From Oikopleura dioica (taxonomy: Eukaryota; Animalia; Chordata), in contig OU015568.1 of NCBI GenBank assembly GCA_907165135.1, forward strand, positions 13,764,001-13,828,000: a stretch of 64,000 nucleotides of DNA, given 5' to 3'. This document shows, piece after piece, positions 6,455 to 59,657 of this stretch (position 1 is its first letter; the number at the start of each line of letters is the position of its first letter). The position numbers and the translations under genes are program-made. Below the pieces are notes generated by a model. The model made no database searches. It saw nothing but the letters and a program-made list of their open reading frames with translations, and was not told where the DNA came from.

Positions 6455-9360
6455 TTAACGCTTACAAAAATGATACGTAAGAAAAATAAAGCCTCAGAAC
6501 GATCGATCACGCGTCCGAATGGCGGACAACTTTCCTGTCCTTTATCGGCGGCTGTGGAGCACGACGGAATTTCGGATCTCGCGCGGATCAAATAGGTTTG
6601 GGACAAATAAGGACTGATAAGTTGGAAACAAATCATTCATGAAATGATCGATGGCTCCCTTTTTCTACTCCTTGTCTTCATCCCCCGCCGGAAGTTGAAA
6701 AAGAAAGAATCAGTAAAAGAACAAAATAATCGAATTAGAAAATCCGTTATTTTTAATTTGCATATTTTGACCGTGGAGAGCATAAAGAACGAAAAAGTTT
6801 GGTATTGCATTTCCAAAAATTGGTAATGGATTACCAAAATTGGTAATGCATTACCAATTGGTAATTTAGACGAGCGTTCCCCATCAAGAGGGCATAAAAG
6901 AGTCGGTTGAAATGTAAAGGTCTAGCGAGCAGATGGACGGGGATGAATATTTTACGCCAACTGAAATTGAGAAAAATGGAGTTAGGGCCCTGCAAATTCG
7001 ATTAAAGCTGACTCGAACTTGAAGACGCTTTCTGCCAACAAAATTAAAACAGATTACCTTTCTGACAGCTAGTTTCGCTCGAAATTCCACAAGGGGTTAA
7101 GTCCCTCTAATGGCCCTTTTGCCGATAACTTTTGTTGTGTACAAATGGTCGAGTTGTGTACTCTTCCGATAACGCGAAATAGAAAAAAACTGATAAAGGA
7201 GCTCAAGGCCAGCCGGAGACGGAGCGACGCGATTTTTGAATTTTGTCGTTTTGGCGGAAATTTGGACAAGATTAAAACTCAAATTCCAGATACAAGAACA
7301 AGCACACACACAGTAAGCAGTTTTGGTAATGTAGAGTGGGCTGTATCTACAAATTCTAGTCTTGGCATTTAGAATAAAATGATTTGGGTGGGTAACTTTT
7401 ATGGTTGGTATTCCGAACTTGATTTAATTTTATCAGCTGACCCGAATAAATATCACGTGATATTACGACGTCATCAGATAGAACTCGTCAAGCAGGTCAA
7501 TTTGATACCCGAATCTACTCCGGGAAACGACAGGAACTTATCGTATACACATTTTAAAGCTCTGACTTTACCGGAATTGACCCTTATTTGACCAAAATTT
7601 TTCAATTTTCATGATTTCTCAGATTCTCAAAGTATTTACCCGGAAGGGAACGGAGGTATTTGAGGGCTCAAAATGATCAGCGCAACGAGCTCTATCAGAT
7701 AAGCTCAAAAAACAAAGCGTACAGAAAAATTATTTGAAAAGTGACCCACCCTAATAGTGATACCTCGAAAAAAACAATTTTCCCGAAAAATCCTATGGTA
7801 ATTCAGAAAAAATAAAAAATGATTCTTTTCGAAATTAAGAATTCTAAAAATGATGGAACTGGTCAGGCTTGACGCAGTTTGGCAGCGCTTTGCCTCTGCA
7901 GAATGCGAGTTTTTTGAAGTTGTCAAGCTCATCAATGACAAACAATCCTACGGGCCATCTTTGCTCTAGTGCATGTCCGAAATTTCAAAATAAGCTTGTG
8001 TTCGCGCATTTATCGAAAAGTTCCTTTACTACAGTCACTGCGGAGCTGGAAAAACCAGTCGTCGAGTTTTCGTGGCACTCTTTTGCAGTCCAACTTAGTT
8101 CTGCTTCGTTGTGTTCTGGCAGCGTGACGTGTATCATTTACCATGAAGTTTTACTCTTGATGGAGAAAGTCCCTGGCACTCTTCCCCGTTTCCCGCGCAA
8201 TTCAATCTCGTGGGATTCTAGAAATTTTGTCAAGCCCATGTTTAGCTCTTTCTCGAATCTCGAAATTATGTACGGAAGAAAAATGTCCGCTGATCGACAA
8301 GTTTTAGATCTGTTCTCACAAACTAACCACAAAATCTTCATTCAAAATAAGTGCCAAACTTTCTCGTTCAATTCAACTCAACCAATTCGGCAACATCTGA
8401 CTTTCAAACATTCTTGCTTCTTTACTATCACCCGAAAAACTGCGACTGCTTCTCGGTGCGGAACCTGGCACCGACAGGGCGAAACGATGCCTGTTTGACA
8501 GGTAGACTACGTGGTACTCCTAATATTCGAGCGGCTGTTCATGCACTCTTAGCATCTCCGTTATGTTTCCACTTCTTGATCAAATAAAACGATGGCCTCC
8601 GGTTTCTGAGCGTACTCAATAACATCCGATGGCCATTTTTATAAGACTTTTGCGGAAACTGCTCAATGGGAGTGATGTTCCATCGGAACTTATTGGTGTG
8701 GAGAATAATTCGTTTGCGATCGTTGGAGCCCTTCGTAGTATGGAAAAATGTTTCGGTAAAAGCGACCGAAATATAAATCACTTTCAAGGGGTCAAATATG
8801 ATAAATATTTCGGCAGGCAGCCAAAAGAATTCTACAAATAAGGCTCGTTTCACGGAAAAATATTTCGGTACGGGCCGAAAGAAAAATCAGAATTTGATGT
8901 CTTTTGAGCAATAAAGTTTCGGTAGGTTTTTCCACTATCATCCTGATTTGCGCTGGTATAAGCATTCAATGAGTGTGCCTTATCAATTTTCACCTCAAAA
9001 ATCTCGAGTTATTTTCTGCTCTCTTAATCAGAAGATCATCTCTGGCTTCATTCTTCATTTCGCAAAAATAAAGGAGGCCGATGATAAAAAAAATGAAATC
9101 GTAATATTTGCTAAAATAAAGGTTAGGGTTAGGGGCCACCTGCAAAAATGACGGAACAAATTACCCAAGGGGGATAGGCTACGGTTAGTTAGGGTTACTG
9201 AAGGTAATGAGAGTATAGAAAGAGAAAACGCAGACACCAAACCAACATCACACGAGTTAGAATGGGCCTCCCGGCCCCGCAAACCCTTACCTTTATACAA
9301 AATTTGTTCTGATTTTATAGCCTTATTTTATCATTCTTTCCGCGGAAAAAGCTCTAACCT

Positions 9361-9568
9361 GAAACCGCGGAAAAATTAAGAACTGGCACAGTAAAGCAGT
9401 TCCAACCAGAAACAGCGGAAAAATTAAGAATTAGCACAGTAAAGCAGCTCCAACCAGAAACCGCGGAAAAATTAAGAACTGGCATACAGAAGCAGCTCCA
9501 ACCAGAAACCGTGGAAAAAATTAAGAAATGGCATAGTAAAGCAGCTCCAATCAGAAACCGCGGAAAAA
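9361..9568 (+). repeat. 48-bp minisatellite, ~4.3 copies
   Basis: Unit GAAACCGCGGAAAAATTAAGAACTGGCACAGTAAAGCAGTTCCAACCA, repeated with substitutions. Confidence 0.9.
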
Positions 9569-9813
9569 ATAATAACCGAAGTATGAGAGAAAATCCAATC
9601 AGAAAACACAAAATAATAAACGACGAATATAAAGAGTCGGTCCAAGGGGGATCAACCAAATAAATAAAAATATACCTATTTGAAGGGACTCCATATACAT
9701 CTCACGAAAAAAATAAAAAATTGCCTACGGAAAGGTACATCAGAGAAAAAAAAGTTCCTCCACTTTAGAAACGAAAAACAGAACTAACTCCAAAAAAAAT
9801 GCTCCAACTCAAC

Positions 9814-13340: not shown

Positions 13341-14851
<1,511 letters not shown>

Positions 14852-15575
14852 AGTAGTTATAGTAGTGACTGACCATTTGATAATTTTTCTGGGAGTCGAT
14901 TGGTAGAGAGCAGTGGAGCACTGAACCATGGTACGCATGGCTCAGTGCGGGGTGAAGGCCCCTCAGGGCCTTCTTGCCAGTCATCAGACACCAAAATGAG
15001 AGCATTAACACCACCACCAAAGTGCAGATGCACATGCATTACATGCATGCACCATCTTACACTATAGGGCGGCGTGATTTTCAGTCCACTCCACTGTAGC
15101 GCTTTTCTAATGGTCAGTCACTACTATTTCGCCTATTAAATAAAAAAAATTATTTTAAACGCACTATCCCCCATTTCTAACGCTACTGAACGTTTTTATG
15201 CTATCCCCTTACTCTTAACTTATCTCTAACCCTAACAAAGCTACGTTTAGAAAAAGAAAATACGCTAACTTGTGCTTATGCCCCGCTTCTCTTCGCTGCA
15301 CCGACCAGCGCTCCAATCCCAGCGCGCCATTCGGAGCGCAGATCCACGCTCAAGGATTAACTCGCCTTCCCCCCGCCTCCGCTCTTTCTTCCGGTTAGTC
15401 ATCTTCCTCTAGAACATTCTATCCATCGATTCTCTCGAACATTCTTTCTCACCATTGATTTTTAGCTCTGCCCGCCCGCCCCGCGCCGCGTCAACAACAA
15501 CGACGACTTCTTATCACGCTGCTGCCGCTGCTGAATTATCTGCTGGACGCTCAATCTTTTCTCACTAGCCAAACA
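14852..15575 (+). repeat. Left terminal inverted repeat of the Maverick (724 bp)
   Basis: Reverse complement of 55664-56388. The only differences I noticed are one substitution and a 1-bp homopolymer difference near the inner end. Confidence 0.95.
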
Positions 15576-15789: not shown

Positions 15790-16612
15790 TTTGCTTGTTT
15801 TTGTTTTTTCAGTTTTGCAAATTTTATACTCGAAAGAAACATTTTGCGTGTTATATGTTCTTTCGCAGGTGCGGTCCAACTGGTGCACCTCTGCATTTTA
15901 TGCAATCAGCCGCCACTTATCGACCTCTCCTACCAAACAAAGTACTTTTGGGTTAAGTACCTCTTTGATGTTTTAGCTACAGGTCTTTCTCACTATTAAT
16001 TTTAGCTTTGCCCGCGTCGCGCTGCACTGCCAACAAGAACGATTTCTTATCACGCTGCCTGGGCGCTCAACCTTTTCCCACAAGCCAAACACCGTAATAC
16101 CTTTCACTGCCTAAATCCTCCTATCTTTCAATAAAACCAAATATACTTGAACAAATGAAACATTTTAACATCGGTTCGTTTTCTTGACGCAAGCATCAAT
16201 CTCAATAGTAATTTTACGGCCCTGATTTCCAGCGCACATTTTCTCGCGCCCTTGGATATAACTTTCAATGAATCGATGGCGTAAGCTCTGCCTTCAAATA
16301 CGATGGCCCGCATCTTTCGATTTTACTTTAGACTTTTCACAAGGAAACGATTTCACAGTCCTTATTTTTCGCATATATAACCGCAGAGCTAAGTAAAGAC
16401 TCTACACTTTTAAAATGCTCCTTTAGCTGCAATAACGAAATCGCTACAGAGTTTTATTGTCAATTAAAAATATGATTTTTTGAAATGTCCAGCAAGATCA
16501 GGAAACACAATGGCAATGCCACTACAACGAGCTTAAATAAGAGAAAATAAAAATTATAAAAAGTAAGTCCTTCATGATTTCAACCATCTCTAAAGGGTTC
16601 TTCAGAAAAAAA

Positions 16613-18698: not shown

Positions 18699-18993
18699 TT
18701 TCTTGCTTGTACTTTTATTGAAGTCAAGTACGCCAAAGAAATTACGCAGCCGAATTTAAAGTTTTTCGCACCTGGCCGGAAGGAAGTAAAAATAAGCGTT
18801 GAATGTTGTTGACATTTACCGTAGGATGTTTTGGGCAAAAAATCTCTCGAACGTGTTTTTCTAGAGATACCGTTGTTTTCCGAGAAAACCGCATCTCTAG
18901 AACATCTCCCTATGTTTTGAAAAATTGTTGAAAATCGTCAGTTTGTCTTTTCAAGCAGTCGAGGAAAGGTCAAAAGCGTTATTTTTGCCAAAA

Positions 18994-20061
18994 ATGGTAA
19001 GTTATTATTCGTCTTTATTTTTATGAAATAATTTAAAATAACTGTGGCTCATATTTATTCGATTTTCTAGCGAACACGATCCATCTCATCTCGGTTTTCT
19101 CGGTTGAGCTCAAATCTCCGGGAAGCCGAGCGACATCTTCGTACCTTAAGGCTCGAAATCTTCGGCAGCGAGGCTTCTTCTGACTCTCCAAGCTCCACCA
19201 CGGATGTCGACATGTCCGACAACGAAAATTCTCGGGGGCTTCTAAAGTTTACCGAGTTGGGGTCGCTCAAGGACCGATCTCACCCCCTCGAGCAGCGATG
19301 GCGACTTCAGGCCCAACAACGAGAGACCCAAGAAAACGAGATTCTTCGTCAAGCGGCGGTGCTCCGAGACGAGCCGATTGCGGAGGAAAATCGACGCGAC
19401 TTGCTTAATCGACTCGACCAGCGAAACCGACGATCTCAGCAGGCTGGTCCTTCAAGCGAGGAGCCTACTGAAACCGAGCAAGCTCGTCAAGGTCCAAGCC
19501 GGGGCGCGCGATTTGGCGAAAAAGGCGGCGTCGGTCCTGCTTTTACCCGGGGTATGAACGGAATCTTCAACACCATCGACGATGCTGCTCGTAATCCTGG
19601 CAAAGCGTTGCGAAAAGCCCTTACTCCGGGTAAAAAAACCCCGGGTAAAAAAACTCCTGCCAAGAAGACGCCAGGCCGTAAAACTCCTGGAAAGAAGAGT
19701 GCGAAGAAGCTGGCTGGCGCAATGGTCCGAGGTCGACGTAAGTTTATTCTTTTTTGACGCGTACTTATATTCTTTAGGGGAGAAATTCCAGCAACCCCCT
19801 CGTGACCAGAAGGATCACTGCGAAGAGCTTCCTGCCCAGTTAGTGGTGCGAATGTTGGGCGAGTATTTGTCCGTCGACGACCAGGAAATCTTGGCGGAGA
19901 AAGCGGCGGAGTTGGAAAGCGCCTTCGAACAGCGCTTCGGCACCTTTTGGGACGACGTCGTGTCTGGACGCTGCAGGGTCACGTTCTTGACGAAGGGCGG
20001 TAGATCCTGGAATGTCGACGGGCCCAAATGGGAAACCAACGCCGAAGAACAAGACGACTAA
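18994..20061 (+). CDS. Spliced ~317-aa protein with KKTPG-repeat tail and putative divergent histone H3/CenH3-like fold
   Basis: Exons 18994-18996 (ATG only), 19071-19737 and 19778-20061; both GTAAGT..AG introns join in frame. N-terminus MRTRS. The C-terminal RDQK..LPAQLVVR..LESAFEQRFGTFWDD..RVTFLTK aligns by eye with H3 RYQK..LPFQRLVR..LQEASEAYLVGLFED..RVTIMPK. Confidence 0.6.
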
Positions 20062-20364
20062 AGTTCGCCTGCAGAAAAGACAAATTTATGCGCTTTTAAA
20101 GAGCTGCAAATAAAAACAATTTATTTCTAGAGACTGTGTCTTTATTGTTGAATATAAGCGGTTTGATAAGTAGCGGTAGAAATAGAGGCTAGTCGAAGGG
20201 ATCGTTTGTTGAAGTGAAATGGTAGCGCTCCAAAGCTACTCTGTAGTGGACGTTGAGAGTGAATTGTAGATCGCGAGCAATTTTCAGAGCTTTTCGAACG
20301 GTTGCTCCGTACTTATCGCGGCGTAAAACAGCGGCTTTCCAAAGGGGTTCGTTTAAAGTTTTTC

Positions 20365-23564: not shown

Positions 23565-24304
23565 CTATTGTGACAGGCCAAACATCCATGGTGCACCACC
23601 CAATCCATCCACCTCTCCGAAGTAATTCGTAATTACTCTTGGTTGATCCGCGTGTCGGACGTCACGTTGAAGTATGATGTAATTGTAGTTGGGGATTCTT
23701 CGTTCTTTGAAGAGCTTCATGGCTTGATTGTAAGGCTCGACCAAGCCGCATTTAGTTGCAATCGTTTTGTTAATTCCACAGTCCGTATGATTGTTCATTA
23801 GAACAAAACTTGTCATGCAGTTTCTAAAAGGAGCGGTTAATTTAAAAAAACATAAAAAATATTGAAGACAAACCTTGCAGTAATGGCCTTTTTGCCCTTC
23901 TCATAAAAATTCTGGGCTATAAAGGCTAACGAGACACCCAAATGTCTACGCCCGTAGGAAAGTAAATATTCACAAGTATCACTTTCAACTGAAGACGACC
24001 ATAAATCGTCTACGACTATTAGGCTTTTACTGTCCGCCTCTATTTGAAAAGTGTCGTCTACCCACTCTCGTGAGGGAAGCCCTTCCATTAGATACAGTTG
24101 TTGGTTACTATGAGGGGTAATATGGAGCGGCTCTAGACGCGGCATAAAATAATATATAGATTCAATATCGCCGTTGATTCCGTCACACTCAATTAGGTTT
24201 TTTACAAAATTACTTTTACCTGTGCCGGTCGAGCCTGCAATAAGCAGTGAACAGGGATGACGGAAGCGAAAGTCGGGGACGAGTTTCGTTAAATGTTGAT
24301 GCAT
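23565..24304 (-). CDS. A32-like (FtsK/HerA) genome-packaging ATPase, 2 exons
   Basis: Walker A GSTGTGKS, Walker B LIVVDD, and the RRH.GVS..FIAQN motif. A 50-bp intron at 23824-23873 restores ITAR|NCMTSFVL. Confidence 0.92.
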
Positions 24305-24884: not shown

Positions 24885-26069
24885 TTGTGTTTTTGTGAGC
24901 ATGAGTGTAACACTTTATTTTTAAAGACAATGGCTGGTCAAATTGACCTCAATAAAATACCCTTGAACGGTGGCTGTTATTTTTCACTGTCGCAAATGTT
25001 AAACATTTGCTCCTTTTGGGAAATTAATCCTCTAACTAATAGAGTGAGAGTTCGCGCCCCAAAAACAAAAGCAGAGCCGTATCCCGACTATGATACCGAG
25101 GAAGAGGGCACCGCCAAGCTACTTGCAGGACTTTGCAACCGGAAAATACCTCGAGGACAGGCTAGACGGTCTCGACGAATTAGAGGTCAAGCGCCTCGAG
25201 ACCGAGGCGAGGAAGCGAGTGAGCTCGAGTCCGGCTTTGAAGAGGAAACGGGGTCGCCCACGAAAGGTGAAACAACCCTTAACGGAGCAAACAATTACGA
25301 CTACTCTGAATCCGAGATCAGCGACGACTATTCAAAATCTTCAAGACGGCGCGAAGTCAAATCAAGAGGTCGGAAAAGGCGGAGAGTTGGATCAATGGAC
25401 GAAGACAGTATCGAAGAAAGTCAACCAGTTGCGAGGCGTAAACGAAGAAGAATTGAAGCGCCTAAAGAAGTACGACGAAAAAGGAGGAAAAACGACGATG
25501 GCTATACTATCACCAGCGATGATTTCAGAAAATTCAGGGATTCAATTTATGACGCAACTCATCGCAGCCAGAAATCCAAAAACAGGCGAATTGAAATTTC
25601 CTCAGGAACTGATAGTGAGCAAATTTCCGACTTCAACGATCAAGATGACAGATCTTCTACCAAGAGCGACTCCAAAAGCGCCGACGAGTCTCAATTCTCG
25701 GACGATGATAATGACAAACGAAACGCCCGGGATGGAAGAAAAAATTCAAGAAATCCAAGAGAGCACTCCGTCATTGTCGAGAACCCCGCGTACAACTTCC
25801 ACAAGCGAAAAACTGAAAAAAATCGGGCTCCCGCTGGACGAGTTATTACAGTTAGAAAGCCCAAAGAGTCTGAGAAATCTGAACAGCTCCCCAAATCTCG
25901 AAAAAGGGGTAGACCTAGTAACTCAATTTCAACAAAACGGGCCCCAGCAAAGCGGAGACGAAAATCTCCTGAATACAGCGAGAATGAAGGCACCACCTCC
26001 GACACTGGAGACAACAACGAGGACGACGAGCCCGTTCTCGAATCAACAGCCAACTTCTGGTCCCGCTAA
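24885..26069 (+). CDS. Low-complexity basic/acidic protein overlapping the integrase frame
   Basis: 394-codon open frame (likely ATG at 24930) with R/K clusters, D/S tracts and an RKRGRP AT-hook-like motif. Confidence 0.55.
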   Translation: MCFCEHECNTLFLKTMAGQIDLNKIPLNGGCYFSLSQMLNICSFWEINPLTNRVRVRAPKTKAEPYPDYDTEEEGTAKLLAGLCNRKIPRGQARRSRRIRGQAPRDRGEEASELESGFEEETGSPTKGETTLNGANNYDYSESEISDDYSKSSRRREVKSRGRKRRRVGSMDEDSIEESQPVARRKRRRIEAPKEVRRKRRKNDDGYTITSDDFRKFRDSIYDATHRSQKSKNRRIEISSGTDSEQISDFNDQDDRSSTKSDSKSADESQFSDDDNDKRNARDGRKNSRNPREHSVIVENPAYNFHKRKTEKNRAPAGRVITVRKPKESEKSEQLPKSRKRGRPSNSISTKRAPAKRRRKSPEYSENEGTTSDTGDNNEDDEPVLESTANFWSR

Positions 26070-27078
26070 TAAACCGCCATATACGCTAGATTTATTTTAT
26101 AACCCTAAACAACCGTCTTTTTACAGCGGCTTTAATGTAGATCGATTTAAACGTATGAACGATTCTATTTCTCTCCATAAACCTCTTCATAGAAATTTCG
26201 CGCGTAACCCTATAATCGCGACTGACTTGTATTCTTGTCTTTTCGCTGATACAATTCTAGCCTATCAAAACTATGGCGAATTCAACAATAATTACAAATA
26301 TATTTTGTGCGTTGTTGATGCCTTATCAAGGCAGAGCTTCGTTCGTAAATTACTTAGCAAAGAGTCTGGAGAATTAGCGACCAATCTTGAATCCATTTTT
26401 CAAACACTAGACTTGCCAGGGCACACTTTTTTCGTGACAGATCAAGGATCTGAATTTCAGCAAGAAGTCCCTACGCTTCTGGCAAAATATGGAATGACTC
26501 GAGTTTTTAATACGGGGCCTCATAAAGCATCCATTGTTGAGCGTTTCAAGTAAGTCTTTATTTTTAATTGTTTCAAAATAGTATTTAATTTCAGTAAAAC
26601 TCTTGAAGCACGACTTGGAAGAGCTTTCACGAGTCAAGGGAACGTTAAACGTTGGGTTCATATTTTACAACCTGTAAATACTGCAATCAATAATACTGTG
26701 CATTCTTCCACTAACGTTAAACCTGCAGATGTAAATCGCTATAATGCTCGGCAACTATTTGACTATTTAGAATCAAAACGATCTAAGCAGTATCGTCAAA
26801 CATGGAGTAAGCTTCATGTTGGCGATGTTGTTAGAATTCCTCGTAAGAATATCAAACGCTTTGAAAAAGGTTTTACTCCTAAGTGGACTACAGAACTTTT
26901 TCAAATTTATCAAATTCATCATGGAGCTAGGGTTTTTTCATTTACTCTTATAAATTCAAAAGGCGTTAAATTAGATAGACGTTTTTATGAAAAAGAATTA
27001 AATCTAGTTATGACACTTTCTGAATTGAAACAAAGACGCTTGCGCCAACGGTATAGATTTTTATTCGTTTTTGTTTAG
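25090..27078 (+). CDS. Retroviral-like (rve, DDE) integrase of the Maverick, >=2 exons; true 5' end uncertain
   Basis: LFADT..YKYILCVVDALSR..TDQGSEF..HKASIVERF. A 45-bp intron at 26550-26594 restores canonical VERFNKTL. C-terminal VGDVVRI..FEKGFTPKWTTELF..FYEKEL is typical of Polinton integrases. Confidence 0.93.
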
Positions 27079-31122: not shown

Positions 31123-34100
31123 TTGATGCCGGAGCCGACACTTGAATCTAACTCTTCTGACGACAACAAAGATGAGAATTCGCTAATGCAAAATAATCGC
31201 GATAGTGTAGAATCTTCGCTCTACACCGAATATATGCCTATACGAAACGTTCTTACATTGATACCAAATGTTTTTAACGATCAAACTCTTGTTCGTATTC
31301 TTCCTGATCGAATGGTCATCGAGCTCCCAAAGTGTAAAACACCTAACTGTCTGTATACTCACGCTGATAAGCGTAAAATGAAGAAACACGAAGCAACGTG
31401 CAATATGGATACTATTGATATTATACATCAAACCGTCGAATCGCATCGAATCATGGATCACGTGCACGAGCTAGTCGCGGAAAACTTCCTGCCTTCATTT
31501 GACTACGTTCAAGAATATTTCGTCGTTTATGATATTGAGTGCACAATGAACTGTAATGGGCTTTCTTCAGGTGATAAATATCATAAACTGGCTACATTGG
31601 CGACTGTAACGAGTAACGGAGAGCGAGAATGTTTTGTTCGCAAAACGGATGAAGTCGAAGGGTCTTTAATAATGCTTACGGAATTCATCAATTATCTTCT
31701 TATACTTCAGAAGAAAATGGAGAGCCAGATTCCTGGTTGCATTTTTCAAGGCGTTCAGCATTATGAAAAGTTGATCGAAGATGAGAACAAGAAAAAAGAA
31801 GCCGGGCTGGGTAGTAATCCTTTTCTTCTGGCAGCTTATCGTAAAAAGCTCAAATACTTAAAGGACTTTTACAAGTTGAAGATTTATTCTTGGGTCGGCG
31901 AGAGATACGACATGGTTGTTCTTTTTCCGACACTTATTTCAGTTTTGTTCTTCTTTGTTGGCGGAAATACAAAACTCATCAGCTTTATAAAACGAGCAAG
32001 CGGATACATGGTTTTGGAAGCTCTTAATCTCAGTTTTCGAGATTTCAAAAACTACACCTGCCCGATGGCTTTGGAAAAACTCGCTCGATCCTGCGGCCTT
32101 AGTGAAGAACTTTTTGTAAAAGGTTCCTTCTGCTATGAATGGTACAATAAGCTTGATCATATAAAAAAGGCAAAAGAGCTTCCAGCGTATCCCTGCTTTT
32201 ATTCTACTATGTCCGTTGCCACTAACGAGTACGTTATTGAGATGGATAAAATAATCGCAACAAATATTGAAGAAGGAAAATGGAAAAACGAGCAAAAAGA
32301 AATCGCAAGCCATGTTTGTCGGTTTTTAAAATTGACCCATATTTTTGACGATCCTGTTGCCAAAGAACACTACGACAATCTACCACCAGCCGAAGGTGCT
32401 TCGTCAGGTGAAAGTCTGTTTCAAATTCGCGATACAATTGATCTATATGTAAAGTGGAAAACTCAAATTGAAAAATTTATTTGTTGGAGCTCTGATAAAA
32501 ACCGTTGGCATTTAGATGAGGATGATGAAGCCACTTGCGCTTTTTTTCGTTTTTCACCAAAAATGTACCGAGCATCTGTTGAACGATGGTACGCGCTTGA
32601 AGAAGCAGGTGAAAATGATAATCCAACAACGATGATGGATTTCCTTATCGACTATAATTACAATGATTGCGTTCTTTTGCAAGGCTCAATTTCTTCATTT
32701 GCTTTATCGAATCAACGACGCTTTGGATTGGGAATTCATTCTGAATTGAGTATTTCACAGCTCGCTCATAAAATTGCATTTCTGAAATACGATAAGAAAT
32801 GTCCGCCAATATATTCAATTTCTCCTGACTTCCCAGAATTATTGCGCGACATGAGAAAAAATCTTACAGGAGGCATTGTTCAAGTTCTTCACAGAGCAAT
32901 TTATTTGAACGGTCCGAATCCTGCGATTCCTGAGTTTGCTTGGAAAACTTTGCTTGGAAAAATTATCAAAGCCGTTATTACCTACGACTTCAACAGTTTG
33001 TACCCGCAATCCTTTCGTGGAGATCTTCCGTGTGGTCCTGGCATAAAATACACATTACAGAAAATGGGCTATTCTTCGTCGATGTGTTATTCTGAGGAGG
33101 AGCGATTTTTTAGCAAGGGGATGTTTCATCAGCGTCAAAATACTTCATTGGGGTCTATAAGATGGTTAGAATATCTGAATTGGTCGCCTGATTACTCTTT
33201 TAATGGATCAATTGAGCATTCTTACAACTTGGAAGAGAAGAAGATTGGAAGTTATTATATTGACGGTTATGCAGAGAGCGAGGATGAGCCAATCTTAATT
33301 CTATCAAATGATGATGGAAATTCGCCAATTAGACGTATAAAAAAACGATACTTTTTTGAATATCGAGGATGTACCTTTCATCCGTGTACTAACAAGCTAT
33401 GCAAAATAAAACCTACTTGCGCACCGAAAAAAGAACTTACTGATCCGGCGACCGGCGCAAAAATCTTTGTTCCCTTTACCAAAGACGGCTTGCTGAAGAA
33501 CGAAGATGCAAGGATGCAGAAAATTATTGAAGACGTTCGAAAAATGGACGGAATTGAAGACTGGGGAAAGCCTCTGAAACACTGGAACGGCTCCGAATGG
33601 GAAGAAACAGAAGGGCCACAAAATTTTCCTCACTGTATTACGATTAAAATGGCGTGCGAGTGGAGAAGAGAATGGAAAATATTGGAGTCTACTGGTAAAA
33701 GCCCTTCTTCAAAAACGTATCCATTTTTATTCAAGAGTGCGAGAAAACCTTCAGGATTACCATCAGGACACGAAGGAGTTACAGAAGCCGAGTTTAAAAA
33801 ATTGGTTTTAGAAGAGGATGAAAACGGCGAAAGTAGATTCTTTGGGTTTGCTATGGTTGATTTACGGTCGCCTCCGTCAGTAATTGAAAAATATAAATAC
33901 ATGCCGCCTATTTTTGCTCGAAAGAAACTTGAACGTGAAGATTTACAAGGAGACTTGAGTGACACTCTTTCGGAAAATCAGAAAAAACGAATGTTTCCCT
34001 GCGAGGAAAACATATTTTGTTTTAATGTGGACAACTACTTTATTTCATCGCAAATGCTTCATTATTACGCGAAGATGGGTATCGAGTACAGGGTCAAGTA

Positions 34101-35103
34101 TTTTTTATCCTATTACAGAGGCAAACCTTTCGAAAATTTCGTCAACGAACTTGTTGCAGATCGAGTCAAAGCGGCAGCGAAAGGCGATCAAGCGGGTCAA
34201 AACTGGATCAAGTTTATTCTTAACTCAGCTGTTGGCTATTTTGCGATTAATCGCTCCAAATTTCTCAAAACTCGAATATTATCATCCGGCGACTTATATA
34301 CGGCGCTCCGTAATCCTCGGCTAAAATCGTTGACTACTCTTCAGGCTGAAAAGACCAAATGCGATCCTCTCCATGAAGCAATTTTTACGAAGAAAATGGT
34401 CAACCATAGTACAGCTCTTCAGGTTCAGTTGTTTGTTTATCAAAACAGTAAGCTTCTGTTTTTCAAATTTCGCGACGTTCTCAATGAATACATGGAGGAA
34501 GGATCAGTTCAAATTTGTTACTGCGATACAGACTCATTTGTGCTTGCATTGGCAGAAAAGACGTTGGACGAATGCGTTAAACCTTCTTTGAAGGATGAAT
34601 GGGAAACGAAAATCAAGCCTAAGTGGTTTGCTACGGAAAGTCCAGCGTCTCAGAAAGAGCCGGGGCTCTTGAAAGTTGAAGCGGAAATTTATAGTGGATG
34701 GTTTATCGCACTCAGTGCGAAATGCTACATTATGACGGAATGCGAGCCCAACAGAATTGATGAAGCAATCGTCGCTCCTGAAAATCGGCATCGAGTTTTT
34801 GAAGTATTGGATGAGCACAATCGAGCTTTTTTGAATGAAACAAATGTGAAACGATCAGCGAAAGGTTGCGCTAAGAAGATCAAACTTCGATATTTGGATT
34901 ATCTTGCGGCACTTTTTTCGGACAACAGCGAAGAGAGCGTCGTTAAAAATATGCCTCTGTTTATGTATGATCAAGTAAACAAACAGATCAAAACGAAAGT
35001 TATGTCAAAACGAGTAATTAACGGCGCTCTTAAAAAGCGCATTATTGATAAGGACAAGATTCGTACTTACGCCTTAAAAAAAGCTGACGGAACTTATTAT
35101 TAG
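31123..35103 (+). CDS. Protein-primed family B DNA polymerase (pPolB)
   Basis: Exo I VVYDIE, Exo II ERYD, Exo III YNYNDC; Pol A YDFNSLYP, Pol B KFILNSAVG, Pol C YCDTDS and ALSAKCY. An inserted IDGY..FEYRGCTFHPC nuclease-like segment is present. 1326 codons uninterrupted. Confidence 0.96.
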   Translation: MMPEPTLESNSSDDNKDENSLMQNNRDSVESSLYTEYMPIRNVLTLIPNVFNDQTLVRILPDRMVIELPKCKTPNCLYTHADKRKMKKHEATCNMDTIDIIHQTVESHRIMDHVHELVAENFLPSFDYVQEYFVVYDIECTMNCNGLSSGDKYHKLATLATVTSNGERECFVRKTDEVEGSLIMLTEFINYLLILQKKMESQIPGCIFQGVQHYEKLIEDENKKKEAGLGSNPFLLAAYRKKLKYLKDFYKLKIYSWVGERYDMVVLFPTLISVLFFFVGGNTKLISFIKRASGYMVLEALNLSFRDFKNYTCPMALEKLARSCGLSEELFVKGSFCYEWYNKLDHIKKAKELPAYPCFYSTMSVATNEYVIEMDKIIATNIEEGKWKNEQKEIASHVCRFLKLTHIFDDPVAKEHYDNLPPAEGASSGESLFQIRDTIDLYVKWKTQIEKFICWSSDKNRWHLDEDDEATCAFFRFSPKMYRASVERWYALEEAGENDNPTTMMDFLIDYNYNDCVLLQGSISSFALSNQRRFGLGIHSELSISQLAHKIAFLKYDKKCPPIYSISPDFPELLRDMRKNLTGGIVQVLHRAIYLNGPNPAIPEFAWKTLLGKIIKAVITYDFNSLYPQSFRGDLPCGPGIKYTLQKMGYSSSMCYSEEERFFSKGMFHQRQNTSLGSIRWLEYLNWSPDYSFNGSIEHSYNLEEKKIGSYYIDGYAESEDEPILILSNDDGNSPIRRIKKRYFFEYRGCTFHPCTNKLCKIKPTCAPKKELTDPATGAKIFVPFTKDGLLKNEDARMQKIIEDVRKMDGIEDWGKPLKHWNGSEWEETEGPQNFPHCITIKMACEWRREWKILESTGKSPSSKTYPFLFKSARKPSGLPSGHEGVTEAEFKKLVLEEDENGESRFFGFAMVDLRSPPSVIEKYKYMPPIFARKKLEREDLQGDLSDTLSENQKKRMFPCEENIFCFNVDNYFISSQMLHYYAKMGIEYRVKYFLSYYRGKPFENFVNELVADRVKAAAKGDQAGQNWIKFILNSAVGYFAINRSKFLKTRILSSGDLYTALRNPRLKSLTTLQAEKTKCDPLHEAIFTKKMVNHSTALQVQLFVYQNSKLLFFKFRDVLNEYMEEGSVQICYCDTDSFVLALAEKTLDECVKPSLKDEWETKIKPKWFATESPASQKEPGLLKVEAEIYSGWFIALSAKCYIMTECEPNRIDEAIVAPENRHRVFEVLDEHNRAFLNETNVKRSAKGCAKKIKLRYLDYLAALFSDNSEESVVKNMPLFMYDQVNKQIKTKVMSKRVINGALKKRIIDKDKIRTYALKKADGTYY

Positions 35104-36305: not shown

Positions 36306-37042
36306 TTAGTATTTTTTAGTGTCGCTTTTGTTTTTCTTCGCGCAGGGTTCATCAAAATGAACGTGTCGATCGATCGCGGAATTGGTTGCATGAGTTTGCT
36401 GAGTAGGGTTCGTTGACAAAGGAGGAGACGGCTGTTGTGTACGAGGAGGTGGTTGTTGTTGAAGATCCGGTCCCGTGAAAGCCTGTGGATACGTCCAAGA
36501 CGGTTGGCAACAGTGGCACAGGCGCTCTATCTGCAAAAGGTGCCCCGATCGACTCAGCCGAAGTCGCGAATTCGCGTATATGATCAACGAGCTCGCTGGT
36601 TGTAACTCTTCTAGCGGGAGATTCTGAGGAGGCTGCCAAACAGGCGAAACTACTGGCGACGGTTGAACTTGCGGCGGAGTCCAATAGAAGGGGTTCGGAT
36701 TGACGGCGGGAGGCACGTGATAGTTCACAGTACACGGGCCCACTGTATGAATGATCGTTCTCGGAGGGTTTCCTGTTTGTTGATAAAGCGGTGATTTCTC
36801 GAGGTCGGGGACAACTTGGTCTGTTTGCGGCTCTGTTGGCTTTTTGGAGACCAGAGACTCGATTGATGGGAATTGGATCGGGCTGGGAGTTCGAGGTTCC
36901 TCTGAGCTTGTTGAAAGGAGTTCGTCCTGAAGTGTTCTCGACAAATCCGGAGAGATGTCGTAAATTTTCTCCTGTTGATCCGGCGCGGGCTTCTAAAATA
37001 TGTAAGCGAATGATGATTTAGAAAAAATACCTGAGTGCTCAT
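36306..37042 (-). CDS. Pro/Gln-rich hypothetical protein, 2 exons
   Basis: A 38-bp intron at 36993-37030 joins MSTQ to KPAPDQQ.. in frame with ORF 36306-36944. Confidence 0.65.
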
Positions 37043-37108
37043 TCTGCGGCTGCTCTTGATTTTGTTGGCGATCTTTCTTGACGGGGAGCTAATTTATAAG
37101 TTAGAGAA

Positions 37109-39691
37109 CTAGATGGTGCTCGTTCTTACGATTAAGGCGTCAGTGGGGGCGACGACAAGATTTGCTTCTTCATGAGTAGTTTGTAAGTCGTCCGGTTTTT
37201 TAGCTGCTAAGAATAATAAGTACTTATAATCCATTCGTAAAATCAATGGCTTACCTTTTTTTCTGTAAATGTCGGGCCAATCAATACCGAAAATAAGCAA
37301 CGCGTCCGGACACAAGTTATAGGCGAGTTCCATGTAGTTGAGTACTTTGGTCATTTGCATTTGTTTACGTTGTAAGTAGATGCTGGGCAGGTTACATTCG
37401 AAATTTCGAAAGAGCCTCATTCGATAAAATGAATTATTTAGACGGCTTGAACAGCGGTCGCACGTAAATACGTCGTTTCCGATTTGATTTTGTTCAAATG
37501 GATTGATAAACGATGTTTGAAGAAATTGTTGGTCTTCAAAGGAGCATTTGATTTTTACCGGCAACTTTTTATCAAGCTGAGACGGGCAACTCGTGCAAAA
37601 GTCGACATAAAGAATACGGAGCTTTGTTAATAAACTTTTAATCTGCCGCTTTTGATGAAGAAGAAGTTGCTTCCTGGATCGTAAATGAAGTCGCATCAGC
37701 CGAAAACGATTTTGACGCTGTTGAAAAGTCTCCAAAGAACCTTTTTTCCACGTCGATAATTCATCAATTTCTTTTCGTGAAAACAGGATGGCTTGCTGTG
37801 CCTGTAAAAAGAGTTCTTGGACAAAATCGTTGAAATACTTCTTTATAGAAAGAAGTAAATGTAGAGCGCAATTGTCGCTTTGATTCTTTAAAAGATGAAT
37901 TCTGAAGACGTCCTGATTGAACAGCTTGCTTTTCATCAAACTGACATTTCCTTCGCACGTTTGAGATCCAAATGAAGGAGCAGAGATGAATGACGTATCT
38001 CCTGATCGCACCCTTTTCTTAGAAATTTTACCGATTCGCCAATCTTTTAACAGCGTTTGAGGGATTCTTTTCTCCAGGGCGAGACTAGGAGCGTCATTGG
38101 TCAGAAGTAGTGGGCAGTGTTTATAATAGGGCGCCATGTAATAAACTGTTTTTCCCAACAGCGTCAGATATTTAAAAAGATCAGTTTGATTAAAATACTT
38201 GCTTCGTAATTGATAGTCACTTTCTTCAAAATTATACGTTCTTTTCTCCAGCGGCACTGTCAAAAATTCGTATTCCTCATAATCATTAGTATTTGTCGTA
38301 GATGAAGGTTTAGCGTTTTGAAGTTGTTTGGATAACGAAGCTGCATCTGCCAGGAATTTCTTCGAAAAATTATAACTCTCGCAAGAAAAGGCTCCAAGAA
38401 GCGTTGTCATTTCGATCGAAATATCAACTTCGTCATCGAAGTTATTAAGTACAAATTCTTCTTGATCAAATTGAGCAGGATCGTTTGCAAAACGGTTACG
38501 ATACATAACCTCAGAAATGTCAGGATTGATCAGTCGGAACGCCCTAGAAATGAGCCTTGTAGATGGAGCGCCTGTTTGAACATCTTGCACTACTCTGTAC
38601 TCGATATCGAGGACAGAATACATGAATTCCAAGGTTGCCAAAGCGCCAGCAGGATTTGTAAAGGTCACATCCCCCAGTAAACCATCAATTGAAATAAAAT
38701 CAGCGTCAAAATTTTCAGGGCGAGCTTTGTATAAACGGGGATTTGGTGCGAAATCTTCAGAAGTAATTAGCGGAGCGTTTTCGGGATAATCTGTGTAGAC
38801 CTGTGCGTTTTTGTCGTTTGCAAGGGTAGGTAGAATTCGGCTTTCTAAGGTTTGAAGAGATTCATTCGTTTGTTTCGTCAAAGTCGTGTTTAAAGATGTT
38901 TTTTCAAATGGAAGAATTACAGGTGGCGGGTTATTCATGATTCTGTTTTTGATTTTTTGCCAGTCTTTACACTTTGTTGCAACTAGAAGTGTATTCCTCC
39001 ACTGTCCATCAATATACGGCGAGAAGGAAAAATGAAAGGTCTGATCTGGTAAACTGAAGTCCATGAAATTTGTAAGACCAAAAAGACCTCGACGTTGAAA
39101 ACATTCTTTAAACACAGCGACTTCCAATACTTGCTCATAAAAATTAGGTTTGTCTCGTTCATCAGTTAACGCGGGTTCTCCCACTCGTATTCTAAAAGCA
39201 AAGTAAGAATCCAGTATTAAAAAGCAAAAATTACCGCTTTGGAGAGTGTTGATGAAGTCGATCAGTACTTTTGTGAATTCGTGGGGGATCAGAATTGACC
39301 CGTCTGGCGCTCGGTGAACAAGAATCGCTTCTTGTTTGCTCGGAAGAATTTTCGCTTGTTCTGGCACTTGATCTGTCGGAAGTACTATTTTTGGCGATAT
39401 TGGGCGCGTGTTTAGGCTTCTGGCAAAAAGATAACCGAGAAGAATCATCAGAAGTGTTAGTAGAATTGTGATCCCGAGGATGATAAGAATCATCTGATGT
39501 GTTGGACTCCTCAAAGGACATAGACGATCCCGAAGAGAAGATTGCGATATTGTCGCATTCAGGCTCGTAGTTTCGGTTTCGCTGCAACTTTCCGTTGTCG
39601 TTTGATCCGTTGTGATCGACTCTGGCGACTGGGCTGCTTCTTCTCGCGGTATCCGGCCAAATATGGCAACGCGGATCGGCTCCTGTATCAA
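37109..39691 (-). CDS. Large (~800-860 aa) single-pass membrane protein of unknown function
   Basis: One N-proximal hydrophobic helix MILIILGITILLTLLMILLGYLFA. Seven N-X-S/T sequons follow it, and the C-terminal region contains several Cys. Confidence 0.8.
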   Translation of the reverse strand: MIQEPIRVAIFGRIPREEAAQSPESITTDQTTTESCSETETTSLNATISQSSLRDRLCPLRSPTHQMILIILGITILLTLLMILLGYLFARSLNTRPISPKIVLPTDQVPEQAKILPSKQEAILVHRAPDGSILIPHEFTKVLIDFINTLQSGNFCFLILDSYFAFRIRVGEPALTDERDKPNFYEQVLEVAVFKECFQRRGLFGLTNFMDFSLPDQTFHFSFSPYIDGQWRNTLLVATKCKDWQKIKNRIMNNPPPVILPFEKTSLNTTLTKQTNESLQTLESRILPTLANDKNAQVYTDYPENAPLITSEDFAPNPRLYKARPENFDADFISIDGLLGDVTFTNPAGALATLEFMYSVLDIEYRVVQDVQTGAPSTRLISRAFRLINPDISEVMYRNRFANDPAQFDQEEFVLNNFDDEVDISIEMTTLLGAFSCESYNFSKKFLADAASLSKQLQNAKPSSTTNTNDYEEYEFLTVPLEKRTYNFEESDYQLRSKYFNQTDLFKYLTLLGKTVYYMAPYYKHCPLLLTNDAPSLALEKRIPQTLLKDWRIGKISKKRVRSGDTSFISAPSFGSQTCEGNVSLMKSKLFNQDVFRIHLLKNQSDNCALHLLLSIKKYFNDFVQELFLQAQQAILFSRKEIDELSTWKKGSLETFQQRQNRFRLMRLHLRSRKQLLLHQKRQIKSLLTKLRILYVDFCTSCPSQLDKKLPVKIKCSFEDQQFLQTSFINPFEQNQIGNDVFTCDRCSSRLNNSFYRMRLFRNFECNLPSIYLQRKQMQMTKVLNYMELAYNLCPDALLIFGIDWPDIYRKKGKPLILRMDYKYLLFLAAKKPDDLQTTHEEANLVVAPTDALIVRTSTI

Positions 39692-39750
39692 AGTTGTCTG
39701 CGACTCCCCTTCCTAAATCGTGATTATCAACTTGCTCATGAAAAATAAAT

Positions 39751-40332
39751 TTAAGCACCTGATACGTTCTCGGAGCTGGCATACGATGGGCCAACGGATG
39801 AAGTGCTGGAGTAGGTGGGACTGATATGAATGCTTGATCCTGAAGCGCTTTTTTCACAGAACTGTGGACGAAAGGCTTTGTCATTTGATAGTGATTCTGT
39901 TGATGATAATTGGGACGATGCTGTGGAATGAGATAGGGCTTCTGCTTCTCTGGCTTGAAAGTGGCTAGTTCGGGGACTAACTTTGGCGTTAGCCCGCTCT
40001 TTGATGTCGATGGTGCTGCCGGGAGCGGCGGAAGTTCCAGCATTAACTTCCCTAACATGGTCTTTCGTCGCTGTCGTGACTGGACTTTCCAATTTTGCTC
40101 TTTTTGCAATTTTGAACTTGGAATCAAAAGCGTCTGCGGTGATAACGACGAACTCCTCGTTGCTGCCTGCGTTTTCATTATTTGTTGAAAAATCTCTACT
40201 GTTAACTTTGCCCATCAACAAAAAGTCATTTTTGTCGGGAGAAAATTTTATTTTTTCAATATTTCTAAGTGAACTAAACAGCGCGAGGTTAAATTTATAA
40301 GTTGGAGGGCGACACAGCCATAGATGGAGCAA
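39751..40332 (-). CDS. Ser-rich hypothetical protein (possibly an upstream exon of the 860-aa gene)
   Basis: 193-codon ORF with a likely ATG at MGKVNS. A phase-0 GT..TTTAG intron could join it to the 37109-39691 frame. Confidence 0.45.
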   Translation of the reverse strand: MLHLWLCRPPTYKFNLALFSSLRNIEKIKFSPDKNDFLLMGKVNSRDFSTNNENAGSNEEFVVITADAFDSKFKIAKRAKLESPVTTATKDHVREVNAGTSAAPGSTIDIKERANAKVSPRTSHFQAREAEALSHSTASSQLSSTESLSNDKAFRPQFCEKSASGSSIHISPTYSSTSSVGPSYASSENVSGA

Positions 40333-40378
40333 TGTTTTTCAAAAACAAAAGTTGATAATAAAGTATAAACGCGTTAAT

Positions 40379-41517
40379 TTAGAATGCTAAAGTGAGTCCT
40401 AAGGGTTCTAAAAGCAGAGTTAAAAAAGATCGCCGTGATTGTAAGTCAGGCGATCGGTTTGTCGACACTTTCGTCTGGGATATCGTCGAGGAGAGTCCGT
40501 CTGCGCTGGTGCTGGTTTCGCCTTTTTAGCCGACTTGGTGGTCGACGCAGATTGGTCTGCTCGTTTGCCCCTTATAAATAATTTGTTATTAATAAAATTG
40601 ACAATTTGATATTACTTCTTGGCTTGAATCGGATCGTTTTCGAAGCTAACGGCATCTTCTTGGGCGGCAGACGATTGATAACCGCTAGTTGAAGTGGAGC
40701 CCGATTGTCCGCTTGTGCAGGTGGAGCCTGATGATGTTGTCGTGACGGTGCTTTGAGAAAGAACAGATGACGCGTAAGACGACACTGAAGACGTTGTAGT
40801 AGTAACAACTACTCGGCGATCGTGAGGAATGCCTTCAAACACGTCGTCATCACTGTAATCGTCGCTATTACAGTCATCTTCCACAGAAGCACTTTCCGAC
40901 GGAAGAGGAGTAACACTAGAAGACGATCGAGCAGGATCTCCGTTATCGCCCCCTGATTTTGTTGGCTCTTTTTCGCCTTCGATTTTGACGCAAACTTCGT
41001 CGACGATTTCGATATTATCGGAGTCGTTTGAGTTCTCACCAACTTTCTCAAATCGGTTATACGATTTGAAGCTAAAATGAATTTAAAAACGTTTGTGATA
41101 TGAGTAATTTTACCTATTCATAATCGCGACCGGGGAATCGTATGGCATTGAAACTGCACTGTGAAAAGACGCGCCGCTTTCATCTAGATCATCCTTTTGC
41201 TCTGTAAGTGAAGCCATTTCTTTGCCTTCTTTTTCAATCGACATTACGGGAATATCTGAATCCTCTTTTACAAAAGAAACGGAATCGTGTTCGTCGACCA
41301 GGGCTTCTTTTTCTTCCGGGGGGCTTTTAATCAAGGGCGCAGCTGCGTTACGACCTGGGGGACCCCAAATTCGAGGTTGTTGGACAGGACGCTCATTGAA
41401 TATCTTTGACATTGGACTCATCGGCGCGCTTTCGTACTCAAGCTTGACATCCTGGATCTTGAGATCTTTGTTGACGAGCTTCATAAGATCGTATTTTTTA
41501 CGAATGCTGCTAACCAC
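40379..41517 (-). CDS. Multi-exon, likely disordered Ser/acidic protein (5' end unresolved)
   Basis: Two short GT-AG introns (~41074-41115 and ~40574-40618) join ORF 41110-41517, the frame of 40612-40884, and a final exon in frame. Confidence 0.55.
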
Positions 41518-41865
41518 TTGTCGGAAATTTGGCGAGTCGTCGTCTTCAGCACATTCTGGAGTTTTCGGCGGTTTTTTTGTAGGCCCGACAGCAGGATCGA
41601 TAACCTAAATTATTTCATAAGACGAGAATTGAAGCGTAAAATTTCGGCTTGAAACCGGGGCACCGTTAAATATTGACCGGACGCAAAAAAGAGCGTTGAT
41701 AGTGCTAAACCAAATGGGAAAGCAATCGAGCGAATGAGGCAAAACCGGAACTAGCCCGGATATCGTCTCCGGAACGGTCAACGCTTCGCCCGGGAAATGC
41801 TAAGGCCTGTCTGAAATATTATACACGTGCCAAAAATGCTCCTGAAAAAGCACGAGCAGAGGAAG

Positions 41866-42936
41866 TTAACGTGATCCTAGCCCAGCCGTCAGACGGCTGG
41901 ATTTCAACTTATGTTTCATTGAAAAACGTGCGTACGCTCGCCCGTTTAAGTGTCTGTTCAGATATCCGCCAAGCTGGGGGACAGCTTGCTGCAACGCTCG
42001 ATTTACCTCATCCGCAGCGGAAGCTTCTTCTTTAACCGTCTTCTTTTCCAAAAAGGACGAGCTGTCGACGCTGTGGGTAGCAAGAGGATGGGCCGGGCAC
42101 GGTTGTTTCCGTCGAAGAGATCCCTTGCGCACCAGATGGCTTAGTTGAGGATTCGTTTGGACAACCGACGCGGGCTTCACAGGTTCTTTACTAATAGAAA
42201 GCTCCTCTACGCCGGGATTTAACTTTTTTAGCTCAGCCAGCGTAGTGGAATCAATCTCATCTTCGCTTTCGGACGAGCTCGATTCTTCAGACTTGACGGG
42301 CGCGGCTGAAAAGTTCTTTTCTAACCATTGCGCGGCTTGTTCTTCTTCTGTCGGCGGCTCTTCTTCTTCAGAGATGGAATCAAAGTTTTCTTTTTCGGTA
42401 AAATCGTAACTCGGCGGCGCTGGTTCGTTGTTATTAGCTTCACCTATCTCATTAACGATGTTTCCCATTGAAAACTGAGTCGTTTGAGCAGGAGCTCCGC
42501 CAGAAGGGCTCTTTTTTTTCGGAGACTTACCGAAAACCAGCTCTCGCAGAGATCTTTTGCGGCGCAAAGGCTCTCTCGGGCCCTGGTTTTCATCATCGTC
42601 TGGGTCTCGTGAGAGTTGAGCGTAACTTGGAGGAGGTGCGCATTGTTCTCGAGTCAGTTGGCGACGCGACTGAGGTTGACTCTGGACAGGAGGTGCTGGA
42701 TGAATCTGCGGCTCTCGTCGTTCAGAATGCTGCTGCCTGCGTTGTTGATCGAAAAGAAGCCACTCTTGACGCTGTTGCCGCTCCTGCATCGCAAGTCTTT
42801 CCGCTTGAGCATTTGCCCTCTGCCACTGCTCTGCCCGTCGTTGGTTCTTTCGTTGCTGCTCCTGGTAATACTCGTCGTTTCTTGCAGCGTCACGGTCGTT
42901 TCGATTGGCTAAAAAGCGTACGACTTTTGTAAACAT
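41866..42936 (-). CDS. Gln/Arg-rich coiled-coil plus acidic low-complexity protein
   Basis: 356 codons from the ATG at 42936 (MFTKVV..). Confidence 0.65.
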   Translation of the reverse strand: MFTKVVRFLANRNDRDAARNDEYYQEQQRKNQRRAEQWQRANAQAERLAMQERQQRQEWLLFDQQRRQQHSERREPQIHPAPPVQSQPQSRRQLTREQCAPPPSYAQLSRDPDDDENQGPREPLRRKRSLRELVFGKSPKKKSPSGGAPAQTTQFSMGNIVNEIGEANNNEPAPPSYDFTEKENFDSISEEEEPPTEEEQAAQWLEKNFSAAPVKSEESSSSESEDEIDSTTLAELKKLNPGVEELSISKEPVKPASVVQTNPQLSHLVRKGSLRRKQPCPAHPLATHSVDSSSFLEKKTVKEEASAADEVNRALQQAVPQLGGYLNRHLNGRAYARFSMKHKLKSSRLTAGLGSR

Positions 42937-43165
42937 GCAATTGTTAACTAATATCAAAACTAACATGAATATGCGCTAGCTCCAAAAGTTCCATTATAAA
43001 TTCGAGACCCGCTTCCATATCGAGAGCTGTTTCGCGAAAAGTTAACGACATTATCACGGTCCAAAAGTAGTTCTCTTGCAGTCATTCGTTCTGACAAACC
43101 TGTTGGCCTTTTGAACATCAAAATCTAACAGCTCAATTAGGAGCCGTATAATCATGTTCGGATAA

Positions 43166-44353: not shown

Positions 44354-44442
44354 CCCCTTTCAATTGTCTAAAGTAATAAGATTTAATAATAAAATCGGAA
44401 AAAACAGATGTTACGTCAGAAAGTACTGGAAAAACAGTCTGT

Positions 44443-55485: not shown

Positions 55486-55663
55486 ATTGTAAAAAAAAAT
55501 AAGATGTCCTTTTTAGAATTCTTCAAAAAAAATATAGAAACATTTTTAAAATATTCTCACACCCAATATCATTACGCAAATAATTCAGGCTGAGCTTCAT
55601 TTGTTCAAATATATTAGGTTTTATTGAATGATAGGAGGGTTTAGGCAGTGAAAGGGATTACGG

Positions 55664-56388: not shown

Positions 56389-56541
56389 ATCCTCTCTCCA
56401 GGACCCTTCAATCTGATACGAAGCTGTTGCTAAACCCCATAAAAAATCATCTGGAAAAGGAGATGTTTCTAGTTTCTCTAAAGGTTTATTGCAAGGGTCT
56501 GCGTAAAAAACCGCAAAAAATACTAAAAATATATTTTTCAT
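56389..56541 (-). CDS. GH1 beta-glucosidase, 5' portion (signal peptide and FPDDFLWG motif), separated from the rest by the Maverick
   Basis: MKNIFLVFFAVFYA..FPDDFLWGLATASYQIEGSWRED; it continues in frame at 14845 once the insertion and one TSD are removed. Confidence 0.95.
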
Positions 56542-59569: not shown

Positions 59570-59657
59570 TAAGAGGCGAGAGGGATAGGAGAGAGAAGGC
59601 TTGGAGACGATTCTTACCTGTTAGACAATCGAAATCGGACTCAAAAATGGGATGAGT
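59570..59657 (-). ncRNA. Spliced-leader (SL) RNA gene, second copy; exon at 59618-59657
   Basis: Reverse complement of the copy at 57423. Confidence 0.88.

Follow-up and report, generated by a model that had tools for sequence, protein, structure and literature searches.

The locus analyzed here raises the question of whether a mobile element of the larvacean Oikopleura dioica carries a histone gene of its own. In the window (the whole stretch of 64,000 nucleotides that was analyzed), the initial annotation had described a spliced gene inside an element and had interpreted its product as a captured, divergent histone H3/CenH3 variant with a long repeat tail, used for packaging the element genome or for interfering with host chromatin or centromeres. 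In this study, we analyzed the gene model, the surrounding element, the distribution of the protein family and the sequence and predicted fold of the C-terminal region. We found that the protein is not a histone. The best overall explanation, to which we give about an even chance, is that a non-histone gene located in a Maverick-like element encodes a nuclear accessory factor associated with nucleic acid or chromatin. The coordinates of all features are shown in Table 1.

Table 1. Features of the gene, of its protein and of the surrounding element, given as positions in the window or as residues of the 317-aa protein.
Feature	Location	Strand	Details
Maverick/Polinton-like element	14852-56388		41,537 bp; terminal inverted repeats (TIRs), target-site duplication (TSD), element genes
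Left TIR	14852-15560		709 nt, 100% complementary to right TIR; begins AG
Right TIR	55680-56388		709 nt
6-bp TSD, ATCCTC	left 14846-14851, right 56389-56394
Protein-primed family-B DNA polymerase (pPolB), 1326-aa ORF	31123-35103	+	DNA_pol_B_2, E 8.5e-14, 51.7 bits (cut-off 25.8)
Putative integrase ORF	25090-26553	+	rve core at C-terminal end, E 1.4e-5
A32/FtsK-like packaging ATPase ORF	23837-24304	-	Pox_A32, 25.1 bits (cut-off 22.8), N-terminal part of profile
Nested palindrome	18859-18902		10-nt arms; inner 15-nt palindrome 18875-18889; ~100 nt upstream of ATG
Exon 1	18994-18996	+	ATG alone; GTAAGT donor directly after
Intron 1	18997-19070	+	74 nt, GTAAGT...TCTAG, GC 0.22
Exon 2	19071-19737	+	residues 2-223 and base 1 of codon 224
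Intron 2	19738-19777	+	40 nt, GTAAGT...TTTAG, GC 0.28, phase 1
Exon 3	19778-20061	+	residues 224-317 and stop codon
AATAAA poly(A) signal	20109-20114	+	48 nt 3' of stop; read from sequence
Predicted helices	residues 6-35, 73-100 and 103-125 (exon 2)		AlphaFold2, full protein
Disordered G/P-rich stretch	residues 126-185 (exon 2)
Basic repeat tail	19623-19736, residues 186-223	+	five TPxK/R-K units with 5-residue period, then SAKK
Family-defining C-terminal domain	19828-20025, residues 241-306	+	acidic; from alignments and AlphaFold2

First, sequence comparison established that this is a real protein-coding gene of O. dioica with two introns. A protein search with exon 2 recovered, at 100% identity, the spliced 317-aa product as CAG5089842.1 (P0001; Oidioi.mRNA.OKI2018_I69.PAR.g12371, from a contig of 17.09 Mb), which corresponds exactly to a Met, the translation of 19071-19736, an Arg from the split codon and the translation of 19780-20058. 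Thus, the three-exon gene proposed in the initial annotation, including both intron coordinates, is the same as the public model. Its MRTRS start was also supported (P0001 begins M-RTRS), and the open reading frame track does split the gene, into pieces at 19104-19757 and 19582-20061. Both introns are tiny and AT-rich with canonical boundaries, and no stop or frameshift was counted in the spliced model. The TAG acceptor of intron 1 is also an in-frame stop immediately 5' of exon 2. The sequence queries of this study were single exons or the public protein P0001.

The possibility that the model is an annotation artefact, or a decaying reading frame that has no function, was considered in view of the first exon, which consists of ATG only, the lack of any known domain in the protein, and the public model of the paralog P0002, which starts at an internal Met equivalent to M49 of P0001. 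However, over 269 residues the two paralogs share 74% identity and 87% similarity, and their alignment contains only one gap. They are colinear without any gap across the junction of intron 2, and the frame is kept across this phase-1 intron. Residues are still conserved in relatives at ~35% identity, and GC content differs sharply between exons (0.55-0.57) and introns (0.22-0.28). Moreover, P0001 resembles the distant paralog P0008 at the N-terminus (residues 2-25 against residues 3-26; 46% identity, pairwise E 3e-4). It is therefore probable that the stretch upstream of M49 is coding, which makes the ATG mini-exon plausible. We consider it very unlikely that the gene is an artefact or a decaying remnant.

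Regarding the sequence around the gene, the nested palindrome is located in the 300-nt divergent intergenic region upstream of it, and might possibly serve as a regulatory site, for which it is a weak candidate. The octamer TCTCTAGA was considered as an element-wide promoter motif and rejected, as it is not enriched in the window (4 copies versus 2.06 expected). Three of its four copies flank the gene, and the octamer recurs at 20126-20133, just past the poly(A) signal.

Second, the claim that the gene is element-encoded was well founded, in that it is located within an element bounded by TIRs and a TSD, ~4 kb from the left end. The combination of a pPolB gene, an rve integrase-core match and an A32-like ATPase with TIRs and a TSD identifies a Maverick/Polinton-like element, a class that has already been listed for O. 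dioica (PMC5240408). The rve match scored 25.7 bits, which is below the gathering score of 32.6, and homologues found with this ORF carry precomputed PF00665. The ATPase ORF also weakly matches Adeno_IVa2 and FtsK. The ATPase and integrase matches each cover part of the profile in one ORF, which is consistent with introns. Pfam searches of 30 ORFs and PDB sequence searches of three large element ORFs recognized neither capsid genes (double jelly-roll and penton) nor an adenain-like protease. The perfect TIRs and the intact TSD suggest a very recent insertion, and the element thus appears to be young.

Several other properties of the element and its flanks were observed. At 41.5 kb, the element is long for the Maverick/Polinton class. 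Near the perfect arms, inverted similarity of 78-92% was found at 16010-16159 and 55596-55766, so that the likeness between the two ends is not limited to the 709-nt arms. On the plus strand, element ORFs in different frames overlap by ~1 kb within 24885-26553: a 394-aa ORF at 24885-26069, extremely charged and rich in R, K, S and E, overlaps the 487-aa putative integrase ORF, and it is the latter frame in which a paralog with 75% identity (P0011) has been annotated. The element also contains a pair of adjacent 62-nt direct repeats with 79% identity (43506-43629). Directly outside its right end, a large near-perfect palindromic structure occupies 56764-60312, with arms of 421, 349 and 85 nt at 96-100% and further inner inverted repeats; this may represent a DNA transposon of the foldback or another type. 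The left flank contains two tandem arrays, at 1-1446 (unit of ~190 nt, at least 7 copies) and 9323-9605 (unit of 48 nt, 5 copies).

To define the family of the protein, exon 3 was used in an exhaustive HMMER scan against 1.84 billion cluster representatives, which returned five proteins only: P0002 (chr1.g438, chromosome 1, 268 aa), three short ORFs on small ENA metagenome contigs (P0003, P0005 and P0006), and P0004 (332 aa, four matching stretches), a repetitive protein that resembles the helix only and was dropped from the family. PAR.g12702 (P0008, 191 aa) and chr2.g7960 (P0010, 142 aa) were added by cluster look-up and profile search. In total, the family comprises the protein studied here and seven relatives, namely three O. 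dioica paralogs and four metagenome ORFs (P0003, P0005, P0006 and P0009), its annotated O. dioica members being PAR.g12371, PAR.g12702, chr1.g438 and chr2.g7960. No further copy was detected in the 64-kb window when all stop-to-stop pieces were searched with the profile and with phmmer. As far as these sequence searches reach, this is a small family confined to O. dioica and a few short marine-metagenome contigs, and it has no named function.

All family members have in common a C-terminal domain of ~70 aa with nine invariant positions (L250, L254, E270, R276, W281, D283, T295, R299 and W308). The distant paralogs P0008 and P0010 possess no TPxK repeats. Thus, it is the C-terminal domain that defines the family, and the tail is an addition in the subfamily of P0001 and P0002. 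Besides the domain and the tail, these two proteins have an N-terminal half that is helical.

Within that subfamily, the tail is the most conserved part of the protein: identity between P0001 and P0002 reaches 87% there, compared with 79% for the C-terminal domain and 58-67% for the N-terminal half. The [ST]Px[KR] motifs start at residues 186, 191, 196, 201 and 206, with the same spacing in P0002, and residues 186-224 have a pI of 12 and a net charge of +15. The earlier description of five CDK-type T-P-x-K repeats resembling an H1 tail was therefore accurate, the five sites having an exact 5-residue period. A lysine-rich tail with [ST]PxK sites, which is a feature of linker histone H1, is indeed present (five sites, residues 186-209, pI 12). 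The net charge of the whole protein is only +9, because it also contains 49 acidic residues. Residues 225-317, which include the acidic C-terminal domain and the acidic end, have a pI of 4.46 and a net charge of -10 (pI 4.54 for the core, residues 241-306). Two AlphaFold2 runs, one of the C-terminal domain alone (9-sequence alignment, mean pLDDT 70.9) and one of the full protein, agree in predicting a helix at 242-251, a second helix at 256-277, a short helix at 280-286 and a beta-hairpin at 290-294/300-304. No relative of the domain could be detected in Pfam, PDB or BFVD; since the model is of moderate confidence (pLDDT 70.9, shallow alignment), the absence of a structural neighbour is not conclusive.

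Third, we evaluated the central claim of the initial annotation, that the C-terminal ~100 residues have an H3/CenH3 fold. Several features give this idea some appeal. Short H3-like strings (R.QK, LPxQxxVR, FWDD and RVTxxxK) can be seen by eye in exon 3. A long divergent region, which ends in a basic tail, precedes a compact C-terminal domain of ~90 residues, much as in H3 and CenH3. Finally, the predicted short helix, 4-residue loop and 22-residue helix superficially resemble alpha1-L1-alpha2. The strings are indeed present as described, but their equivalence to H3 failed in all tests.

At the sequence level, Pfam returned no histone-fold or Histone family for exons 2 and 3 (E<=10), and no histone-fold family for the full 317-aa protein or the other seven members of the family (E<=1). 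No histone was found among all PDB chains, solved H3 and CENP-A included, by phmmer with exon 3 or by the family profile (E<=10). The PDB matches of exon 3 and of the family profile were non-histone proteins at chance level (best E 0.14-0.19), and exon 2 gave zero matches. There was also no histone in the scan of 1.84 billion representatives with exon 3, which returned paralogs and relatives only. The CenH3 of O. dioica has already been characterised, and CenH3s are reported to be ~50% identical to H3 in the fold (PMC3156773); thus, a true H3 variant should be found easily by such searches. A linker histone fared no better, as neither Linker_histone in Pfam nor a PDB match to its winged-helix was obtained.

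At the level of fold and charge, the predicted topology (alpha-alpha-short alpha followed by a beta-hairpin) is unlike alpha1-L1-alpha2-L2-alpha3, the model placing a hairpin where L2-alpha3 would be expected, and the acidic nature of the domain is the opposite of what characterizes the DNA-wrapping histone fold. The AlphaFold/Foldseek check suggested in the initial annotation also turned out against a histone: the model consists of helices and a hairpin, and a Foldseek search of PDB and BFVD gave no histone among the matches listed, where the lowest E was above 0.2 and nothing reached E<=0.001. Because the model is of moderate confidence, this fold-level negative is weaker than the sequence-level negative. 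Several other matches were judged to be due to chance, including that of exon 3 to the N-terminal end of the chlorovirus alginate lyase 3a0n_A (21 residues of the beta-hairpin, E 0.42), because the paralogs show no conservation of the residues involved. A profile match to helices of an archaeal tRNA-splicing endonuclease (E 0.14) and the Foldseek matches to actin, SIFV capsid and MADS proteins (E>=0.27, TM<=0.32, rmsd>10 A) were likewise at chance level. Taken together, the protein resembles H3/CenH3 in its general layout, whereas it fails in profile match, solved-structure match, topology and charge, and we regard a captured H3/CenH3 fold as extremely improbable. It would have been remarkable to find an H3/CenH3 on the Maverick of an animal, but the data speak against this.

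What the protein does instead can be approached through the class of its short linear motifs and its charge, from which we propose, by analogy, that it would be a nuclear accessory factor associated with nucleic acid or chromatin. The basic tail might provide nuclear targeting and non-specific DNA contact, the latter possibly in the minor groove as for SPKK/TPxKK repeats. The SP(K/R)(K/R) repeats of sperm H2B and linker H1 contact DNA in A/T-rich minor grooves, a binding that is inhibited by phosphorylation (PMC9903204). These tails resemble ours in their repeated [ST]P[KR][KR]-type units; on the other hand, our protein has no histone fold or H1 winged-helix by Pfam, its repeat has a spacer residue (TPGKK), and its tail is internal rather than terminal. 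The threonines of the tail may similarly be targets of proline-directed (CDK-type) kinases, in which case phosphorylation would loosen binding or relocate the protein in the cell cycle. A precedent is nucleolin, in which the N-terminal TPxKK repeats are targets of CDK1 and proline-directed kinases and control localisation (PMC9064852). In nucleolin, too, the T-P-x-K-K units are arranged in tandem within a basic, disordered stretch beside acidic segments, but it has eight TPxKK units versus five here, our protein has neither an RRM nor an RGG domain, and Pfam and PDB searches revealed no homology in sequence; thus, the likeness is one of motifs only. As for the other parts of the protein, the long N-terminal helices may mediate self-association, and the acidic C-terminal domain could dock onto a partner protein. 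Since the distant paralogs have no TPxK repeats, whatever the tail contributes is not the core function of the family.

Whether the gene serves the element is a separate issue, on which codon composition has some bearing. The GC3 of the gene is 0.51 and 0.72, against ~0.38 in the polymerase/ATPase block. Between 21355 and 49337, GC3 is bimodal in the element: polymerase, ATPase and neighbouring ORFs are at ~0.34-0.38 (range to 0.45), and the minus-strand ORFs at 36306-49337 are at 0.44-0.54, except for an 860-aa ORF at 37109-39691 (0.38). The maximum of the element is in the gene studied here. Such bimodality may reflect modules of different origin or of different expression level, and the value of our gene agrees equally with a passenger that has another origin and with an element gene that is highly expressed.

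The first of these options would mean that a larvacean cellular family, for example a nucleolar or chromatin-associated one, has one member that became Maverick cargo and takes no part in the element cycle. In addition to the GC3 of the gene, host-type introns and a poly(A) signal would agree with such an origin, as would the presence of four annotated members on three chromosomes or regions (PAR, chr1 and chr2). Among annotated O. dioica proteins, the integrase search returned a single relative, PAR.g13029, which is not beside any member by gene number. However, integrase models may be missing from the annotation, as the window's own integrase was likewise not returned; with PAR.g13029 as its only return, the integrase search makes synteny by gene number uninformative. 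The raised GC3 of the ORFs at 36306-49337 also weakens the argument, in that a second block of this kind in the element makes composition alone no mark of foreign origin.

A comparison with known elements points in both directions. Maverick/adintovirus-type elements are described, in the part of the study drawn on here, as carrying lineage-specific accessory genes (PMC8502044), a fact compatible with cargo of cellular origin. The restriction of our family to O. dioica and tiny metagenome contigs is no less typical of element-borne ORFans than of host genes, and the gene resembles the Maverick, Polinton and adintovirus accessory ORFans of the same source in being lineage-restricted and located between TIRs together with genes for pPolB, a putative rve integrase and an ATPase of A32/IVa2 type. 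On the other hand, no counterpart of our protein, and no histone-like or basic core protein, is among the accessory genes that this part of the source describes. We therefore consider a passenger without a role in the element to be possible but rather unlikely. What can be said of the preferred reading is that the gene probably encodes an orphan, nuclear, basic-tailed accessory protein, either belonging to the young Maverick-like element or travelling in it as a passenger.

A more specific role within the element would be that of a structural core protein that coats or condenses the linear DNA of the element in a particle. DNA viruses have basic DNA-condensing proteins, such as the adenovirus core proteins VII, V and mu, and our protein could be an analogue of these or of protamine/H1-like viral proteins. 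It resembles the adenovirus proteins in having a basic segment that could neutralise DNA and in coming from an element that belongs to the adenovirus/Polinton lineage. A core protein would also be consistent with the highly basic and conserved repeat tail, with the predicted self-association helices, with the packaging-ATPase gene of the host element, and with the high GC3 of the gene, which may mark strong expression. However, with a net charge of only +9, the protein differs greatly from protamines in composition; moreover, its conserved domain is acidic and the basic repeats are absent from the distant paralogs. No similarity to viral core proteins was found in PDB or BFVD, nor was there any Pfam match. 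Since capsid genes were not recognized in the element by Pfam or PDB sequence search, a particle stage of the element is itself hypothetical. For these reasons, a structural core protein is, in our judgement, unlikely, and the non-histone nuclear accessory factor remains our preferred explanation.

To our knowledge, nothing is known about the coating or nuclear tethering of Maverick/Polinton genomes, and the family described here is thus a reasonable candidate for such a role. The idea of a core protein of a Maverick/Polinton-type endogenous virus, in which a new acidic docking domain is combined with a kinase-switchable TPxKK DNA-binding tail, is improbable on the present evidence. If true, it would provide the first candidate genome-condensing protein for the Maverick/Polinton lineage, and a functional parallel to H1 and the adenovirus core proteins that is related to neither. 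Under the preferred explanation, the locus adds to a compact chordate genome a conserved, spliced orphan gene in which a kinase-site-rich tail of DNA-binding type is joined to an unclassified domain, and would represent a small addition to the SPKK/TPxKK-type proteins outside histones.
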